DNA of 64,000 bases from contig NZ_JMCB01000018.1 of the NCBI RefSeq assembly GCF_000737315.1, positions 62,001-126,000 on the forward strand. Reading direction: 5' to 3'. Positions within the stretch are counted from its first letter, which is position 1, and every line of letters starts with the position of its first letter. The stretch is from Hyalangium minutum. GTDB lineage: Bacteria > Myxococcota > Myxococcia > Myxococcales > Myxococcaceae. The notes under the pieces were generated by a model. It was not told the origin of the DNA and searched no databases. It worked only from the letters and a program-made list of their open reading frames with translations. Made by a program: the position numbers and the translations under genes. Positions 3,761 to 10,978 of this stretch are shown here, piece by piece.

Positions 3761-3886
3761 GGACGGTGGTGAACCTAGCAAGTGGGGGGCCAGCTGAAAC
3801 GGGGGGGTGCCCCCTTCATTCCCCCCGCGTACAGCCCTCGATTCCCGCCAAATGGGCAGGCCCGGCCCCGAGGGCTTGCCAAATTG

Positions 3887-4915
3887 TCACGCGGAGCGCT
3901 GCAGCAGCCGCATTCCGGCCTCCACGAGGTTGAGCGCGCCGCCTCGGCCGGCGTTGTCCACCACGGCGAAGAGGGTGAGCCACTCGGGGGCCTGGGGAAA
4001 GGTGCGCAGGCGGCCGACGTGGATGGCTGGGTCCGAGGCCACCAGCATGGGCATGGGGTAGACCTTCTCGGCCGGGGCATCCAGCACCTTGAGGGCGGGC
4101 GACGTCTTCAGCGCAGCGCGGTATTGCTCCACCGGCGCGGGCGTCTTGAGCTGCACGTGGACGCTCAGCCCGTGGCCATAGAAGGTGGGCACCTGCACGG
4201 CGGTGCCGGCGATGACGGGCGTCTCCCCCCGGGCGCCGAACAGCCGCGCCGCCTCGAGCGTCCAGCCGGCCTCCTCCTCCGTCCAGGGCGAGTTGGCCAT
4301 GAACGGGCCCACCTGGGGCACCAGGTTGAAGCCGATGCGCTGCGGAAAGGCATGGGGCTCGGGCTCCCGGCCCGAGAGCAGGCCGGCGGTCTGCTTCTCC
4401 AGCTCCGAGACCCCGATCACCCCCGCCGAGGACGCGCTCACCATCGCTGTGACTTGTGCGCGCACCACGCCGAAGGCCTTCTGCAGCGGGGCGATGAGGG
4501 ACACCAAGGCGGTGGACACCGCGGAGGGCACGCTGACGATGCGGCCTTTGAGGGGGGCGCCGAGCAGCTCAGGGTTGAAGCTCGGGAGCACCAGCGGCAC
4601 GTTGCCGTCGCCTCGGAAGGCGGAGCTGGCGTCCACCACCCAGGCGCCCGCGGCCTGAGCGGCCGGGGCCAACGTGCGAGAAGCGGCCGCCGGAGTGGCC
4701 AGCAGCGCCAGGTTCACGCCCCGGAAGGAGTCGGGGGTGACCTTCTCCACCGCCAGCGTGTCCTCGCCGTAGTCCAGCTCCACCGCCTCGGAGCGCTCGG
4801 AGGCCAGCAATGTGAGCTGCTCGGAGGTGACGCCCTGATCCAAGAGCGCGGAGAGCACCTCGCGGCCCACCACCCCCGTGGCCCCCACCACGGCGATCCG
4901 TACGTTCTCGTTCAT
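3887..4915 (-). CDS. Aspartate-semialdehyde dehydrogenase-like protein (Asd/Usg family) lacking the catalytic Cys
   Basis: Start re-called to ATG 4915. RIAVVGATGVVG, VVDASSAFR, VPLVLPSFNP, FNLVPQ, VPTFYGH and DN..RGGALN all match the Asd fold. The PNC active-site motif reads VPSAV. Confidence 0.85.
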   Translation of the reverse strand: MNENVRIAVVGATGVVGREVLSALLDQGVTSEQLTLLASERSEAVELDYGEDTLAVEKVTPDSFRGVNLALLATPAAASRTLAPAAQAAGAWVVDASSAFRGDGNVPLVLPSFNPELLGAPLKGRIVSVPSAVSTALVSLIAPLQKAFGVVRAQVTAMVSASSAGVIGVSELEKQTAGLLSGREPEPHAFPQRIGFNLVPQVGPFMANSPWTEEEAGWTLEAARLFGARGETPVIAGTAVQVPTFYGHGLSVHVQLKTPAPVEQYRAALKTSPALKVLDAPAEKVYPMPMLVASDPAIHVGRLRTFPQAPEWLTLFAVVDNAGRGGALNLVEAGMRLLQRSA

Positions 4916-5037: not shown

Positions 5038-6636
5038 ATGCGCTCTCCGCTCCAGGTCTCGAGTCTCTCCTCACTCTTCGCCCTGCTGGTCCTCAGCGGC
5101 TGCAACTCCGCCTACCGCGCGGCCATGTCCCGCGCCGAGGAGGCGGCCCAGCGCGGCGACTTCATGACCGCAGCCCATGGCTACCGCGACGCCTGTGCCG
5201 CCTCTCCCGACGATGAGAAGGCTTGCTCCCGCGCCCCCATCTTCGCGCAGAAGGCCACGGATCAGGCCATCGCCACTGCCCGCCCCGCTTGCGACGCGGG
5301 CGATCTGGATCAGTGCCTCCCGCCCCTCCTGGCGGGCTGGGATCTGATCCCCAACCACCCCGAGCTCACCTCGCTGTTCGATCGCGCTGGCCAGGTCCAC
5401 ACCGAGCGCTGCTCTCAGTGGAAGCACGAGGGCGCCGTGGCCCAGGCCACCGCCGGGCTCGCGTGCCTCCAGACCCGCGCCACGCAGATCCCCGTTCAGA
5501 GCTACCAGTCGCAGCTCTCCGGCCGCGCGAACCAGCTCTCCCAGCGCTTCGCAGGGCTGGCCGCCGCGCTGTCCGGAGCGAGCACCGCAGGCGCCGCCAA
5601 CGTGCTCTGGTCCGCGGCGCAGTGCCTCGCGCCGGAGACGAATGTGGCCGGACAGGCCGACTCGGCTCGCCAGAGCTTCCTGGCCCAGAGCGCCATCCCC
5701 GTGGCCATCCGCGTCGAAGGGAAGATCCCCAATCCGATCGCCAGCAACCTCAACGCCTGCCAGAGCCTGGCCGGGAACCTGGCCCCCGCAGCGCGGTGCG
5801 CCGTGGGCAACCCGCTGCCGGGCCAGCCGGAGCCGCTGGAGATCCGCGTCAACGCGCTCATCTCGCACCCTCGGGAGGATGTCGTCGAGGAGGTGCGCAG
5901 CCTGCGCTACCTCGCCAGCACGCGGCAGGTCCCCAACCCCCAGTTCAGGGATGCCCGGGAGCGCCTGAAGAAGGCCGAGTATGAGCTGCAGGTCACCGAG
6001 TCCGCGAAGAACTCCAAGGACCAGGCCTGCGCGCAGTCCCGGCGCAACCCCAGTTCCTCTGGCGGCACCCAGGGTGGCAAGTCGCCCTGCGACGAGGCCT
6101 CGGAGTTCGCCCAGACGCTGGAGGCCCGCGTCAATGAGCGCAACGAGGCGCGCAACTTCTTGAGCAACACCCCCGAGCTGATCACCGAGGAGGTGTGGGA
6201 CAACTTCATGTACCCCGTGCGGACGCACCGCTGGGCCTCCAACTACCGCTTCACGCTCCAGTCGAGCAGCCCTGGCTCGGCTCCTACCCCGCAGCAGGAC
6301 GGAGCGGTGCAGTTCGAGGACCAGGAGCACGTGGGCTTCCCCCCCGGTGGGCTCCAGGCCGATCCGCTGGACGTGCCTCCCGCCCGGGCCTACGCGGACG
6401 GCTTCGTGCAGCAGCTGGCGCCCGCCGTGTTCTCGGAGGTGCAGCGCGAGAGCATCGCCCGCGGCAACACGCGCCGGGCCCAGTGCAACGCCCTGCCGCA
6501 GAACTGGGACGCCACCTGGGTGCAGTGCTGGGCCGAGGCCTCGCTCTGGGGGACCGGGAAGGAGCCCCAGGTGCCCGAGTTCCTCAACATCCTCGCCTCC
6601 AGTGCGGGGGCGACGGCTCAGCCGCAGTGCCGCTGA
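5038..6636 (+). CDS. Hypothetical Cys-rich lipoprotein with TPR-like N-terminus
   Basis: Lipobox VLSGC; helical Ala-rich N-terminus; many Cys; 532 aa with typical codon bias. Confidence 0.7.
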   Translation: MRSPLQVSSLSSLFALLVLSGCNSAYRAAMSRAEEAAQRGDFMTAAHGYRDACAASPDDEKACSRAPIFAQKATDQAIATARPACDAGDLDQCLPPLLAGWDLIPNHPELTSLFDRAGQVHTERCSQWKHEGAVAQATAGLACLQTRATQIPVQSYQSQLSGRANQLSQRFAGLAAALSGASTAGAANVLWSAAQCLAPETNVAGQADSARQSFLAQSAIPVAIRVEGKIPNPIASNLNACQSLAGNLAPAARCAVGNPLPGQPEPLEIRVNALISHPREDVVEEVRSLRYLASTRQVPNPQFRDARERLKKAEYELQVTESAKNSKDQACAQSRRNPSSSGGTQGGKSPCDEASEFAQTLEARVNERNEARNFLSNTPELITEEVWDNFMYPVRTHRWASNYRFTLQSSSPGSAPTPQQDGAVQFEDQEHVGFPPGGLQADPLDVPPARAYADGFVQQLAPAVFSEVQRESIARGNTRRAQCNALPQNWDATWVQCWAEASLWGTGKEPQVPEFLNILASSAGATAQPQCR

Positions 6637-6645
6637 GCGTGGTGT

Positions 6646-7428
6646 ATGCATGGCGAAATGCGCAACGCCATCCATTCACCGCCCTCTCGACACTACGGGA
6701 GGGCGGTGCTCGGGTGCGCGCTCACCCTCGCTTGCGCCGCCACGCCCGTAGCGGATCCTGACATCGCCCGCCCTCGGCCAGGGGAGCCACCTCTGGAGCG
6801 GCTACCTGGGCCGCTCCTTGTGTTCAGCTCTTATCCGAGCGCCCTACTCGGGGCCTGCCAGAAGATCCTCTCGAAGCCAGGCGCCTCCGCGGGTCCACGG
6901 GGGCAGCCCGGGTTCGACGTACGCTGGCGCGTGGGCACCGAGTATTGCGCATGGATCTACTACACCCCTGACGGGAAGTACGTCCTCAGCAAGCTGACGG
7001 ATCAGACCCAGGTCCGTCTTGCGGAACAAGGCAAGCGCTGTCTCCTGCCGTCACACGTCGATGATCCACGGTTTCCGCCCGACAGCATCCAGTACGTCTT
7101 CGCGCTGCACAATCACCTGTACGACGACCTCTTGTCGAAGGACGACCTGTCCTTCATCTTGAACCAAGGGTTCGCGCATGGCTTTACACACGAGACGCAG
7201 GACGGAAGCATCCGCCTTTCCGCCGTTGCGTTCTTCTCGAACGCCCCCGATGCTCCTCAATGCGATGGCTTCTACCAGTACATTCCCCTCACCGGTCAGA
7301 TCCTGAAATGGACGCGCACCCCTCGGTGGGAGTGCAAGCAAACCCACTGGGTCGAGTGGAATGAGGGGCTGGAGATAGCAAGCGTCCGCGAGACAAGCGC
7401 CCCCTGCTTCGAGGACACCTCGCCGTGA
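6646..7428 (+). CDS. Hypothetical lipoprotein with a JAB/MPN-like (DUF4329-like) metal-binding motif
   Basis: Lipobox LTLAC; EYCAWIY (E at 6940) and HNHLYDDLLSKDD (7108-7146) resemble the E...HxH...SxxD JAMM signature. Confidence 0.65.
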   Translation: MHGEMRNAIHSPPSRHYGRAVLGCALTLACAATPVADPDIARPRPGEPPLERLPGPLLVFSSYPSALLGACQKILSKPGASAGPRGQPGFDVRWRVGTEYCAWIYYTPDGKYVLSKLTDQTQVRLAEQGKRCLLPSHVDDPRFPPDSIQYVFALHNHLYDDLLSKDDLSFILNQGFAHGFTHETQDGSIRLSAVAFFSNAPDAPQCDGFYQYIPLTGQILKWTRTPRWECKQTHWVEWNEGLEIASVRETSAPCFEDTSP

Positions 7429-8087
7429 AACATCTCCTGCTCCTGAGCCCCTTGCTTCTCTCGTCCTGCCTGCGGGGAGCCCCTGTGTCTTCTGCCGCTC
7501 CGGCGGACGAAGTCCCATCCATCAAGGTCCCGCAGCTACTCGGAGTCAAAGCCACACCCGTGGGTGTGCAAGACACCCTCTATCGGCTGGATGGGACCAC
7601 CGTCCGCGCCCTGGCCATCGCCACCCAAGACTTCTTCTCCTCGAGCGGCCAGGGGAAGGAATGCTGGCAGAACGCTGGCGGACATCGCTACGAGCTGTTT
7701 CAGCAAGAAGGGATCACGTTCGTCCACATCTCTGCGGATCTCGTCAACTGTTGGCAAGAATTCGCCCCCATGGACTACGGCGTCACGTATGCCATCAGCG
7801 CGGAGGGCCGGATCCTGCGGCGCATCTCTTCGGGCGAGCCCGATGACCCTTATCGATTGCCCGTCCTGGATTCAGGTGGGGCGACAGTTCCCCAAGACAA
7901 GGACTTGTCCGGAATGTTGGGGTCTACCTCGGGCAGTTCCCACATCGCCATCCCGCTGAGCTGGCTCGACGGGGGCTCTCCGCCCCCCCGCGGCGCCTTC
8001 GTGCCGTCCTCATCCATTCCCGATGGTGGGCCACGGCCTGATGGCGGCCTCCCGAGCGAAGCGGGCTCGTCACCCCTCATTCCGTGA
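7425..8087 (+). CDS. Hypothetical lipoprotein, partner of the upstream JAB-like lipoprotein
   Basis: GTG start overlaps the upstream TGA (GTGA); lipobox LLSSC; core LDGTTVRALAIA..DF..C..HRY...VTYAISAEGRILRR; Pro-rich DGG-repeat tail. Confidence 0.75.
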   Translation: MKHLLLLSPLLLSSCLRGAPVSSAAPADEVPSIKVPQLLGVKATPVGVQDTLYRLDGTTVRALAIATQDFFSSSGQGKECWQNAGGHRYELFQQEGITFVHISADLVNCWQEFAPMDYGVTYAISAEGRILRRISSGEPDDPYRLPVLDSGGATVPQDKDLSGMLGSTSGSSHIAIPLSWLDGGSPPPRGAFVPSSSIPDGGPRPDGGLPSEAGSSPLIP

Positions 8088-8114: not shown

Positions 8115-8849
8115 TCAGTCCTCTTTGAGGCGCGCGGTGGGCGCGGGCCCGGGCAGCGGAGGAAACTTCGGATTCCGCTCGGGCTCGGAGGCGCGGACGT
8201 AGTGCGGCTCCAGGGAGAATACGGCCTCCTGAGGCTGTGTCTCCGGGAAGCGCACCAGCCGCGCTAACTCCACTGCGGACGGGAACACCGGCCCCGTCAG
8301 CAACCGCTCGGGCGCCACGCCCGCCTTCTCCAGGGCCGCGCGGTAATCGCCGAGCGCGGGCCCCAGCGCCAGGGCGTGAGGCTCGGCCGCCATCTTCGCT
8401 GCCACTTCCTCGGGGGACATCGCCGTCTCGGGCTCCAGCGACTCCACGCTCCGCCCCGTCCGCCGGTACGCGCCCAGGTACAGATCGTCCTTGCGCGCCA
8501 CCGCGAGGCAGAAGAGTGGCGAACCCTCAGGTCCCTCCAGCGCCACCGCGGCCAGCGAGGACGCCCCCGCCACCTTCAGCCGCGACGCATAGGCCAGCGC
8601 CTTCACCGAGGCCAGGCCGATGCGCAGGCCCGTGAAGGAACCCGGGCCCAGGCCCACGGCCAGCCCCTCCAGGTCCGCCAGCTTCACCCCGTGCCGCGCC
8701 AGCAGCTCACCGATGACACCGGGAAGGATCTCGCTCTGCTTCTGGGGCGGCCCCGCCACCACGTGCTCGAGCACGCGCAGGTCCTCGCCCACGCGCTCCA
8801 CCAGAGCGAGGGACAGCGTCAGCGTCGAGGTATCGAGCGAGAGGAACAC
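8115..8849 (-). CDS. tsaB: tRNA threonylcarbamoyladenosine biosynthesis protein TsaB
   Basis: LSLDTST, GPGSFTGLRIG and C-terminal LEPHYVR motifs. Confidence 0.95.
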   Translation of the reverse strand: MFLSLDTSTLTLSLALVERVGEDLRVLEHVVAGPPQKQSEILPGVIGELLARHGVKLADLEGLAVGLGPGSFTGLRIGLASVKALAYASRLKVAGASSLAAVALEGPEGSPLFCLAVARKDDLYLGAYRRTGRSVESLEPETAMSPEEVAAKMAAEPHALALGPALGDYRAALEKAGVAPERLLTGPVFPSAVELARLVRFPETQPQEAVFSLEPHYVRASEPERNPKFPPLPGPAPTARLKED

Positions 8850-8858
8850 AGCCCTCCT

Positions 8859-9371
8859 CTACCCCGGCTGCGCCTGGAGCGGGATGGAAAAGGCGGAGAC
8901 AGGCCCCTCGTCCTTGCAGCGGTAGACGCGCACCCGCGCCAGCCCCTTCTGCACCATCTCCAGCTTCTTGGCCGCGCCCAGAGACACGTCGATGATGCGC
9001 TCGTCCTTGAAGGGCCCTCGGTCGTTGACGCGCACCTCCACGGACTTGCCGTTCTCCATGTTCACCACCCGCACGCAGCTGCCGAAGCGCAGCGTGCGGT
9101 GGGCCGCCGTCAGGCCGTTCTGGTCGAAGCGCTCCCCGCTCGCCGTCTTCCGGCCGTGCAGACCCGGGCCGTAGTACGAGGCCAGCCCCTCGCCCAGATA
9201 CGTGCGCGAGCCCTTGTCCGGGGTCTCCTCCGGCGCACCGGGACGGGTCTTTCCCGCACTACCGGGGGCTGGGCGATCGCTCGCATCCGGCCGGGCCGCA
9301 CGCGTCGCGCAGCCCGCCAACAGCCCTGCTCCCAACGCCACCGCGAGCAGCCGCACCAACGCCCCGCTCAC
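8859..9371 (-). CDS. rlpA: Septal ring lytic transglycosylase RlpA family lipoprotein
   Basis: Lipobox LLAGC; GLASYYG, TASGERFD, TAAHRTL, VRVNDRGPF and RIIDVS (DPBB fold). Confidence 0.92.
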   Translation of the reverse strand: MSGALVRLLAVALGAGLLAGCATRAARPDASDRPAPGSAGKTRPGAPEETPDKGSRTYLGEGLASYYGPGLHGRKTASGERFDQNGLTAAHRTLRFGSCVRVVNMENGKSVEVRVNDRGPFKDERIIDVSLGAAKKLEMVQKGLARVRVYRCKDEGPVSAFSIPLQAQPG

Positions 9372-10978
9372 CGGGTGATGTCGTTGAAGAACGCCACCAG
9401 CATCAGGGCCACCAGCATCGCCAGACCGATGACGTTGGCCACCTCGCGCACGCGAACCGGAATCGGCCGGCGGCGCACGCTCTCCCAGCCCGCGGCCACC
9501 AGGTGGAAGCCGTCGAGGATGGGGATGGGCAGCAGGTTCATCACGCCCAGGTTGATGGAGATGATGGCCATGAGCTGCAGGAACGAGTCCCAGCCCTGCT
9601 GCGACGTCTTCGCCGCCATCTGGTACATCATCACCGGCCCGCCCACGGAGCTCAGCGGCACGTCACGGGTGATGAGCCCGGCCACGGCCTTCACCGTCTG
9701 CTTGGTGATGGCCGGCACCACGCGCACGGCCTTCCCAATCGCCTCGCCCGGCGAGTAGTCCAGCTGGATCATCTCCGGAGGCGCCGCCGCGTTCCACTGC
9801 ACGACGCCCACGCCCAGGTACGTGTGGGTGTTGCCCAGCGCGTCCGTGCTCTTCAGGGTGGAGCGCGCCAGCTGGGTGGTGTGCTCACCATCAGCCCCCC
9901 GCCACGTCAGCTGGAAGGGCTTCTCCTCCATCCCACCGAGCTTCACCTGGAAGAGGTGGAAGGACTGGAGCGGATCGCCATTGAGGGCCACGAGCCGGTC
10001 GCCGGACTTCAGGCCCGCCTTCTGCGCCGGGCTGTCCTGCGCCACCGACGCGATGTAGAGGTCCACCGGCTCCGCGCCCAGGGCCGCGAACCCCTCCCCC
10101 GGCTGCTTGTTCACCTGGAGCTTCACCTGCTCGGGAGCGCGGACGGTGATGGCGCCCACATCCAGCACCGGCGAGCGCAGCACCACCAGCTCCAACGGGC
10201 CCTGCTGCTTGTCCATGACCTGGTACAGCGTGGCCACGTCCGGCACGTACGTCCCGTTGATGGTGAGGATCCGATCGAAGGTCTTCAGCCCCGCCTGCTC
10301 CGCCGGCGAGCTGGGCGGGACACCCAGGGTGGGCAGCTGCGAGTACGGCTCCGCGCCCAGCACGCCCCGCTCCACCGTCTCCACGGGCGAGGACTCCACC
10401 TTCTTGAGCGGCGTCACCTCCACAATCATCTGCTTGCCATCGCGCTCGACGGTGAGCGGCACCGGGCGCTCGAAGCGGCCGATGAAGGCCTCATCCACTT
10501 CCTTGTCCGTGCGGACCTTCTCGCCATCCACCGCGAGGATCCGGTCTCCGGGGCGAACCCCCGCGACCGCCGCCGCCGAGCCGGGCGCCACGTAGCCCAC
10601 CCGGGAGGACACGTCCTCGTACGGCCCGAGGAACACGAAGAAGTAGACCAGGACGGGGAACGCCAGGTTGAACGCCGGTCCGGCGAGCACGATCAGCATG
10701 CGCTTCCACGGCGGCTGCGCCAGGAAGCCCCGGTGGGCGTCCTCGGGCGCCAGCTCCTCGCCCGGCACATCCCCCGCCATCTTCACGAAGCCGCCCAGGG
10801 GCAGCAGCGCGAGCTGGTATTCCGTGTCTCCCTTGGTGAAGCCCAACAGCTTGGGCCCGAACCCAATGGAGAACTTGAGCACCTTCACCCCGCAGGCCTT
10901 CGCCACGAGGAAATGGCCCAGCTCGTGCACCGTCACCAGCACCCCGAGCAGGAGCGCGAAGAACCCGAGACTCTGCAT
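9368..10978 (-). CDS. rseP: RIP metalloprotease RseP (M50) with three PDZ-like domains
   Basis: HELGH, GGFVKM, AGPAFN and NLLPIPILDG motifs; three S(P/A)A..AG(L/V)..(G/F)DR(I/L) PDZ signatures. Confidence 0.95.
   Translation of the reverse strand: MQSLGFFALLLGVLVTVHELGHFLVAKACGVKVLKFSIGFGPKLLGFTKGDTEYQLALLPLGGFVKMAGDVPGEELAPEDAHRGFLAQPPWKRMLIVLAGPAFNLAFPVLVYFFVFLGPYEDVSSRVGYVAPGSAAAVAGVRPGDRILAVDGEKVRTDKEVDEAFIGRFERPVPLTVERDGKQMIVEVTPLKKVESSPVETVERGVLGAEPYSQLPTLGVPPSSPAEQAGLKTFDRILTINGTYVPDVATLYQVMDKQQGPLELVVLRSPVLDVGAITVRAPEQVKLQVNKQPGEGFAALGAEPVDLYIASVAQDSPAQKAGLKSGDRLVALNGDPLQSFHLFQVKLGGMEEKPFQLTWRGADGEHTTQLARSTLKSTDALGNTHTYLGVGVVQWNAAAPPEMIQLDYSPGEAIGKAVRVVPAITKQTVKAVAGLITRDVPLSSVGGPVMMYQMAAKTSQQGWDSFLQLMAIISINLGVMNLLPIPILDGFHLVAAGWESVRRRPIPVRVREVANVIGLAMLVALMLVAFFNDITR

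Follow-up and report, generated by a model that had tools for sequence, protein, structure and literature searches.

A new, unannotated family of two-lipoprotein modules is specific to the Myxococcaceae. We describe it from a 64,000-nucleotide stretch of Hyalangium minutum DNA (contig NZ_JMCB01000018.1, positions 62,001 to 126,000), referred to here as the window, in which two overlapping genes encode the lipoproteins that we call protein 1 and protein 2. The two genes go strictly together, in a module confined to the Myxococcaceae that defines two protein families outside current domain libraries. It may consist of an envelope-acting hydrolase effector and a cognate lipoprotein immunity or inhibitor protein, a reading to which we give roughly an even chance. 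With the same middling confidence, we hold that the pair is best read as a variant of the JAB-type effector–immunity pairs. The features of the pair are as follows.

6646 to 7428, plus strand: gene for protein 1 (ORF1), a lipoprotein of 260 residues with a JAB-like motif, from the list of open reading frames (ORFs) and the sequence.
7425 to 8087, plus strand: gene for protein 2 (ORF2), a small lipoprotein partner of 220 residues, from the ORF list.
7425 to 7428, plus strand: GTGA overlap, four bases shared by the start of gene 2 and the stop of gene 1.
7411 to 7415, plus strand: GAGGA, a Shine–Dalgarno-like site for protein 2 within the end of gene 1, 9 nucleotides 5' of the GTG.
6646 to 6735, plus strand: signal peptide and lipobox of protein 1 (ALTLA, then C30), with the Cys30 codon at 6733 to 6735.
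7425 to 7469, plus strand: signal peptide and lipobox of protein 2 (MKHLLLLSPLLLSS, then C15; the residues before C15 are LLLSS), Cys15 being invariant in the protein 2 alignment A2.
6940 to 6942, plus strand: Glu99 codon; the residue lies in the motif E-Y-C-A-W-x-Y-Y, where a beta strand begins, and is invariant in alignment A1.
7108 to 7146, plus strand: block H155-N-H157-x6-S164-x2-D167, from sequence, conservation, and an AlphaFold2 (AF2) model.
7108 to 7116, 7135 to 7137, and 7144 to 7146, plus strand: H155-N-H157, S164, and D167, respectively, within that block.
7512 to 7829, plus strand: globular core of protein 2, about residues 30 to 135, from alignments A2 and A4.
7830 to 8084, plus strand: disordered tail of protein 2, with many Pro, Gly, and Asp residues and a predicted local distance difference test score (pLDDT) of about 50, from alignment A2.

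The module was followed through a collection holding one genome per species, where 138 stretches encode a relative of protein 1, all of them as unnamed hypotheticals; locus-level analyses were made on the best 80 of these. A tblastn search of the 80 loci placed a protein 2 homologue directly downstream in 82 of 86 protein 1 matches. The two-gene arrangement is not a matter of chance, since it recurs in 80 independent genome loci. Where the start of protein 2 could be scored, 29 of 71 pairs share a four-nucleotide overlap, ATGA or GTGA, and most of the others are separated by gaps of 1 to 56 nucleotides. Pairing also extends to a distant branch, about 25% identical, that is represented by Myxococcus stipitatus (CP004025) and a metagenome contig. 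The original prediction, made from the letters of the window, had put forward similar pairs as recurrent hypotheticals of myxobacterial genomes and had named independent occurrence of the two genes as a finding that would speak against it. The pairs do recur, and from the side of protein 1 the genes are not independent. The layout that it described, two lipobox genes overlapping by GTGA and predicted to be translationally coupled, was likewise found at the coordinates that it gave.

Neither family of the pair has a Pfam or NCBIfam name. Relatives of protein 1 numbered 66 by word search and 90 by a profile search of 1.84 billion representatives, all unnamed; their named sources are all Myxococcaceae (Myxococcus, Corallococcus, Hyalangium, Archangium, Cystobacter, and Vitiosangium). 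Homologues of protein 2 numbered 7 in the first search and 168 in the profile search, again all unnamed, and 0 carry a Pfam domain. Phage carriage was considered and rejected, as no relatives were found on 2.9 million viral contigs. A genome holds between 1 and at least 9 copies; of the best 80 loci, Hyalangium versicolor contributes 9, a Hyalangium metagenome-assembled genome (MAG) 7, and Vitiosangium 6. At 55% identity, the copies form about 19 subfamilies, many of them present in several genera, and each genome carries a different subset.

Gene decay within the module is one-sided. Protein 1 is broken or deleted beside an intact protein 2 at four loci (L017, L078, the second pair of L044, and L090), and among the loci examined there is no intact catalytic protein 1 without protein 2. 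In L017, from a Myxococcus (6229 to 6231), and in L078, from a Hyalangium MAG and an unrelated subfamily (5070 to 5072), the TGG codon of the invariant Trp103 of protein 1 has become TGA. The reading frame of protein 1 is otherwise intact in both. UGA is the leakiest stop codon and can be misread as Trp; the two changes could be an attenuation rather than a loss, or a coincidence at a mutable codon. The second pair of L044 also has an in-frame TGA in protein 1, and in L090 (Pyxidicoccus caerfyrddinensis) protein 1 is reduced to a C-terminal remnant of 23 to 46 residues, with an intact protein 2 at 3867 to 4570. This last protein 2 gene stands directly after two MacB_PCD/FtsX permease genes, which are LolC/E-like by domain content. 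Decay is harder to interpret at two further loci: L038 has a frameshift at the end of a contig, and in L042 both genes are decaying.

The only unpaired protein-1-like genes have lost the glutamate, both histidines, and the aspartate of the motif. They comprise an orthologous set (L003, L004, and L006; in L003 at 9210 to 10103), where the loss of residues was seen by alignment, and the third gene of the M. stipitatus locus (L088, 7123 to 7776), where the loss of E, HxH, and D was read by eye. These paralogues keep the cysteines, and the M. stipitatus copy comes directly after an active pair. Such genes could serve as decoys, could be pseudo-enzymes, or could be copies in decay.

Decay in this direction is what a protective role of protein 2 against protein 1 would lead one to expect, and it fits the enzyme with a cognate inhibitor that was originally proposed. 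In a toxin–immunity pair, the toxin never occurs without its immunity gene and the immunity gene can outlive the toxin; this is the pattern found here, in a small sample. Strict pairing and one-sided decay are, however, equally expected for any dangerous hydrolase that is kept under an inhibitor. This brings in the main rival explanation, in which protein 1 is a self-directed envelope enzyme, protein 2 is its dedicated regulator or inhibitor, and the many copies are specialised paralogues, not weapons. Such an enzyme would remodel the peptidoglycan or envelope proteins of the producer, for example in growth, gliding, sporulation, or developmental lysis, and lipoprotein-controlled cell-wall hydrolases offer a model for it. 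We judge this explanation to be the strongest competitor, and still somewhat unlikely.

The identities of protein 1 and protein 2 co-vary between pairs (r = 0.69, Mantel p = 0.001), which is the co-diversification of partners that had been suggested as a check, and pairwise identities show that protein 2 diverges faster than protein 1. The pair had been described as compositionally distinct from its flanks, and it is: in the window, GC content is 63.1% for protein 1 and 63.8% for protein 2, with GC content at third codon positions (GC3) of 0.77 and 0.74, against 68.5–72.1% and a GC3 of 0.89–0.94 in five flanking genes. The trough, at 58–64% GC, is confined to positions between about 6900 and about 7950. 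Averaged over 82 loci, GC is 58.6% in protein 1, 62.4% in protein 2, and 69.1% in the flanks, and protein 1 lies at least 3 points under its flanks in 80 of the 82.

The order asd ... protein 1 – protein 2 – tsaB – rlpA-like – rseP is common to three related genomes, which allows the pair to be compared with fixed neighbours. In the closer syntenic genome, the two proteins are 80% and 78% identical to those of the window, and the products of the flanking genes are 87–97% identical. In the syntenic MAG, identity falls to 66% for protein 1 and 43% for protein 2, and synonymous divergence (dS) is 2.3 and 1.4, against 0.33–0.52 for the flanking genes. The divergence from the MAG looks more like a replacement of alleles at a fixed site than like a simple relaxation of constraint.

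A self-directed enzyme accounts less well for several of these features. Genomes carry patchy and differing subsets of subfamilies, a GC deficit of 7–10 points relative to the flanks holds in 80 of 82 loci, synonymous divergence at the syntenic locus is 3–6 times that of the neighbours, and protein 1 has been lost outright in several lineages. Patchiness, low GC, excess dS, and outright loss are unusual for housekeeping functions.

Other observations weigh against an effector–immunity pair. The split of decayed loci, 4 versus 0, would arise by chance about 1 time in 10, and the sample is small. The subfamilies are old, common to several genera, and not hyper-polymorphic. The ratio of nonsynonymous to synonymous divergence (dN/dS) is 0.1–0.4 in both genes, which places both under purifying selection overall, and there is no gene-wide positive selection. 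No secretion or delivery genes are linked to the pair, and neighbourhoods vary from locus to locus. The spacing from histidine to serine in the motif is x6, one residue short of the canonical x7, and all matches to JAB by structure or by profile fall short of significance. Shared old subfamilies, purifying selection, and the lack of a linked delivery system are also what a self-directed enzyme would lead one to expect, as is the stability of this copy beside tsaB in the three related genomes.

On the combined strength of its sequence and its predicted structure, we consider that protein 1 is probably a JAB-like hydrolase that has diverged strongly, has additional beta elements at both termini, and contains three disulfides; membership in the JAB/MPN group is likely but not proven. 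The positions originally given for the motif, 6940 and 7108 to 7146, are exact. The expectation that its His and Asp residues would be conserved also holds: none of the 80 complete paired homologues has lost E99, H155, H157, S/T164, or D167 (EHH[S/T]D). These homologues span about 19 subfamilies with a mutual identity of only 40–60%. The residue set is that of the JAMM signature, E-x(n)-H-x-H-x7-S-x2-D, with a gap of 6 instead of 7 between the second His and the Ser. In the AF2 model (pLDDT 89, predicted template modelling score 0.83), HxH forms the end of strand 149–156, and S164 and D167 form the start of helix 165–178. This placement fits that in JAMM enzymes. The segment E-Y-C-A-W-I-Y-Y resembles the E-x-x-G-hydrophobic strand of Rpn11 and AMSH. 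The letters HNH might also bring to mind an HNH endonuclease; that reading was rejected, given that the residues are contiguous and lie in a JAB-like strand–helix setting.

Searches by structure and by profile lean toward the same group at sub-threshold scores. Most of the best Foldseek matches of protein 1 in the PDB are MPN proteins or MPN-bearing chains, among them Rpn8-Rpn11, the Jab1 domain of Prp8, the 26S proteasome lid, and COP9; the best E value is 0.038, and template modelling (TM) scores are 0.21–0.28. In the BFVD, a phage 'JAB domain-containing protein' ranks second (E = 0.15). Only one Pfam family matches the window protein at E <= 10, namely DUF4329 (PF14220), over residues 96–122 around Glu99, with 13.6 bits against a cut-off of 28.6. 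In a Pfam scan of 41 members, DUF4329 (8 members) and Prok-JAB (6 members) are the only families matched by more than one member, DUF4329 covering the Glu block and Prok-JAB the HxH..S..D block. All Pfam matches among the 41 fall below the cut-off, so that none reaches a JAB-clan family above its curated threshold; the best E values are 0.028 for DUF4329 and, in distant members, 0.0047 for Prok-JAB. Neither the full-length profile A1 nor the core-only profile A6 found any PDB sequence at E <= 10, and hhalign against E. coli YicR, a RadC-like JAB protein, aligned only the HNHP...S..D block, with a probability of 0.8%. PHROGs and PADLOC scans of the 41 members gave noise only, the spanin matches reflecting lipoprotein signal peptides. 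The signature residues of the original prediction are confirmed, with a spacing of x6 in place of x7; its MPN fold is only weakly supported, by MPN proteins that top the Foldseek list at scores short of significance.

These scores leave room for a protein 1 that is not of JAB type, in which the E, HxH, S, and D residues bind a metal or ligand structurally or for sensing, or belong to an unrelated fold, and the two lipoproteins form a non-catalytic outer-membrane complex. All similarity to JAB being sub-threshold is in its favour, as are the shortened spacing and the extent of protein 1 that falls outside any JAB core (residues 31–95 and 181–253, about half). Against it, the five motif residues are invariant while the remaining sequence falls to 40% identity, and their secondary-structure setting in the model is that of JAMM enzymes. 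Moreover, two JAB-clan Pfam models match the two motif blocks in the correct order, and MPN proteins dominate the Foldseek results. On balance, we find this explanation quite unlikely.

The JAMM-like motif had also raised the idea of an exported deubiquitinase-like enzyme that acts on eukaryotic ubiquitin conjugates of prey or hosts. The motif is the one feature in its favour, and nothing points to such a target. A cognate lipoprotein partner in the same compartment speaks for a target in the bacterial envelope, there is no significant match to deubiquitinase families, and toxin-type JAB domains are without the conserved residues of the ubiquitin-tail tunnel (PMC3482391). We regard this possibility as very improbable.

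The core of protein 2, a small protein, is predicted as one helix on a four-stranded sheet, confident over about residues 50–140 (AF2 pLDDT 80–95), and contains invariant C80 and C109 and the motif Y-A-I-x-x-x-G-R-I-L-R-R. Protein 1 has six conserved cysteines (C71, C101, C132, C206, C230, and C254), and conserved cysteines in both partners are as expected for oxidised, exported proteins. A fold search with protein 2 that included the PDB gave nothing significant, the top matches being WRKY, SMC, LolA, and DUF2874, all at E > 0.06. In most subfamilies, the disordered tail carries P-x-x-W-x-D-G-G followed by P-D-G-G or D-A-G repeats; several subfamilies (L066, L074, L087, and L088) have a protein 2 without the tail and are still paired. 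Double forms occur as well. A 367-residue fusion of two protein 2 domains lies at the syntenic tsaB locus of a related MAG (L001, 6771 to 7871; L085, 8699 to 9802), and double forms of 346–369 residues are present in metagenomes (P0069–P0071 and P0073).

The Gly-Gly tail invites a different role for protein 2, as a substrate or cargo that is processed by protein 1, or as an escort that helps it fold or localise. Prokaryotic JAB enzymes cut after Gly-Gly, and JAB peptidases trim ubiquitin-like tails; the recurrent W-x-D-G-G and P-D-G-G motifs in a disordered tail would suit such a relationship, and strict pairing with translational coupling would too. The tail-less subfamilies that remain paired argue against it, and so does the core, whose helix and four strands are not a beta-grasp. 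In addition, protein 2 stays intact where protein 1 is broken or deleted, and it does so under purifying selection: the orphan protein 2 genes of L017 and L090, compared with each other, have a dN/dS of 0.16. We think that a substrate or escort role is improbable, at about the level of the non-JAB alternative.

Returning to an effector with its immunity protein, the pair could work as follows. Protein 1 would be exported by the Sec pathway, lipidated at Cys30, stabilised by three disulfides, and anchored on the periplasmic side of the outer membrane. There, it would act as a zinc-dependent amide-bond hydrolase of the JAB/MPN+ kind on an amide bond of the envelope, with the metal bound by His155, His157, and Asp167, Glu99 serving as the general base, and the intermediate stabilised by Ser164. 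Protein 2, made from the same mRNA by translational coupling and lipidated at Cys15, would reach the same compartment and bind protein 1 through its small disulfide-bonded alpha/beta core, keeping the producer safe. Each genome holds its own repertoire of diverged pairs, and the enzyme would damage recipients without the matching partner, whether kin competitors or prey. Candidate routes of delivery are outer-membrane exchange, vesicles, or none. The export signals, the conserved motif, the strict pairing, the copy number, the unusual composition, the fast divergence at a fixed locus, and the one-sided decay are observed; we infer the catalysis, the binding with its inhibitory effect, a target in the periplasm (links of peptidoglycan or of envelope proteins), and the route of delivery.

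The placement of both proteins in the outer membrane follows from their sorting signals. In M. xanthus, Lys at position +2 is the signal for inner-membrane lipoproteins (PMC3222651). The [LG][GA]C lipobox column of protein 1 is conserved across 80 homologues, and its +2 residue is S or A in 73 of the 80 and K in none; the protein 2 family has V, L, A, G, P, or I at +2, never K, and mostly R at +3. Because both are without a +2 Lys, both proteins are expected in the outer membrane. A matrix-sorting signal based on Ala at +7 was also considered; the Ala is present in the window protein, and only 15 of 80 homologues carry it.

A more specific version of the effector–immunity reading is that protein 1 is a JAB-like outer-membrane lipoprotein weapon, passed to neighbouring cells by TraAB-mediated exchange (or carried to prey in fusing vesicles), that hits the recipient's envelope from the periplasm, with lipoprotein immunity deciding survival. 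We hold this version only tentatively, and as unlikely. The absence of a +2 Lys from both partners counts against it and against the wider reading, since recipients of the toxin by outer-membrane exchange would then receive the antidote too. Work on bacterial kin recognition, on cooperative predation, and on the sharing of outer-membrane proteins between cells relies chiefly on myxobacteria as its model, and all toxins so far known to us to travel by outer-membrane sharing are nucleases that need the cytoplasm. If the specific version is true, outer-membrane exchange would have its first cargo that acts in the periplasm, and kin discrimination would gain a second layer beside the SitA nucleases. 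If the effector–immunity reading alone is true, an envelope-acting arm would be added to the myxobacterial arsenal, and the pair would provide a tractable experimental system for JAB-type toxin domains, whose activity is so far only predicted.

Among known systems, the closest in design are exported JAB toxins with lipoprotein immunity. The original prediction had held that an exported JAMM would be unusual; that view does not survive, as exported JAB toxin domains have already been published, namely Tox-JAB-1 with the lipoprotein Imm65 in polymorphic toxins of Bacteroidetes, and Tox-JAB-2, which is DUF4329 (Zhang et al. 2012, PMC3482391). For Tox-JAB-1 and Imm65, too, function is a matter of prediction only. 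In Tox-JAB-1/Imm65 as in the pair, an exported domain with E, HxH, S, and D stands beside a small alpha+beta immunity lipoprotein, and the likeness is one of design, not of sequence: the lipoprotein partner is directly downstream, as in 82 of 86 matches here, and neither protein matches the Pfam models of Tox-JAB-1 or Imm65 at E <= 10. Tox-JAB-1 forms the C-terminal tip of large RHS proteins and occurs only in Bacteroidetes, whereas protein 1 is a stand-alone lipoprotein found only in Myxococcaceae. Similarly, DUF4329 toxins are carried by Rhs, type VI secretion system (T6SS), or type VII secretion system (T7SS) proteins and are paired with a cytoplasmic Imm-NTF2-2, whereas the partner here is a lipoprotein.

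The SitA/SitI systems resemble the pair in another way. These are Myxococcus lipoprotein toxins that are delivered by TraAB outer-membrane exchange (PMC8546572). They share with the pair the bacterial group, a lipoprotein toxin, an immunity gene directly downstream, many diverged copies per genome, and repertoires that differ between strains. SitA, however, combines an N-terminal escort with a swappable C-terminal nuclease that acts in the cytoplasm, where a cytoplasmic, non-transferred immunity protein meets it (PMC8546572). By contrast, protein 1 belongs to a single family that is conserved from end to end, and protein 2 is an exported lipoprotein.

Cell-wall effectors offer a third comparison, here of mode of action. 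Tse1/Tsi1 and Tae/Tai are T6SS amidase or peptidase effectors that act on the cell wall, with periplasmic or lipoprotein immunity, and orphan immunity genes of this type are kept after effector loss. A cell-wall hydrolase neutralised by a small periplasmic immunity protein is the feature in common. Effectors of the Tse1/Tae kind have no signal peptides and are injected by the T6SS, whereas protein 1 is predicted to be Sec-exported and lipid-anchored, with no T6SS genes nearby. Finally, AfJAMM, Rpn11, CSN5, AMSH, and RadC-like JAB proteins share the E...HxH...S..D order, on the end of a strand and the following helix, and JAMM/MPN+ isopeptidases and RadC-like JAB proteins are the top structural neighbours of protein 1, with sub-threshold scores. 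Protein 1 departs from the JAMM/MPN+ enzymes in its x6 spacing, in being exported and disulfide-bonded as predicted, and in its extra N- and C-terminal beta elements.

Both genes are annotated differently in the deposited record (GCA_000737315.1, JMCB01000018.1), where protein 1 begins at V96 (165 residues) and protein 2 at V21 (200 residues). These starts exclude window positions 6646 to 6930 and 7425 to 7484 and remove both signal peptides; that of protein 1 also drops a conserved N-terminal region of 60 residues. The longer ORFs are the real ones, because homologues conserve the N-terminal parts that the annotation excludes. Judged by this conservation of sequence, the two gene starts in the record are mis-called, and they are corrected here. 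An alternative start of the protein 1 gene lies at an ATG at 6658.

The immediate neighbours, between which the pair had been correctly placed, are the following.

5038 to 6636, plus strand: gene for a hypothetical lipoprotein of 532 residues, the upstream neighbour.
8115 to 8849, minus strand: tsaB, the downstream neighbour (TIGR03725, E = 5e-42).

A functional link of the pair to these neighbours was considered and rejected. TraC is an accessory lipoprotein of outer-membrane exchange, and the 532-residue protein matches the NCBIfam TraC model over residues 7–324 with 56.9 bits, far below the cut-off of 500. This TraC-like gene is present in 0 of 80 genome loci, and its one recurrence is in a metagenome contig with close synteny (L084), where it is 89% conserved. 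As for tsaB, it was rejected as a linked partner, its adjacency to the pair being limited to one lineage. Over window positions 1 to 64000, there are no tRNA or tmRNA genes and no Rfam families at the gathering threshold, and a scan for promoters and terminators was uninformative. The upstream 532-residue gene has a normal, high GC content; it stops 9 nucleotides before protein 1 and may share a transcript with the pair.

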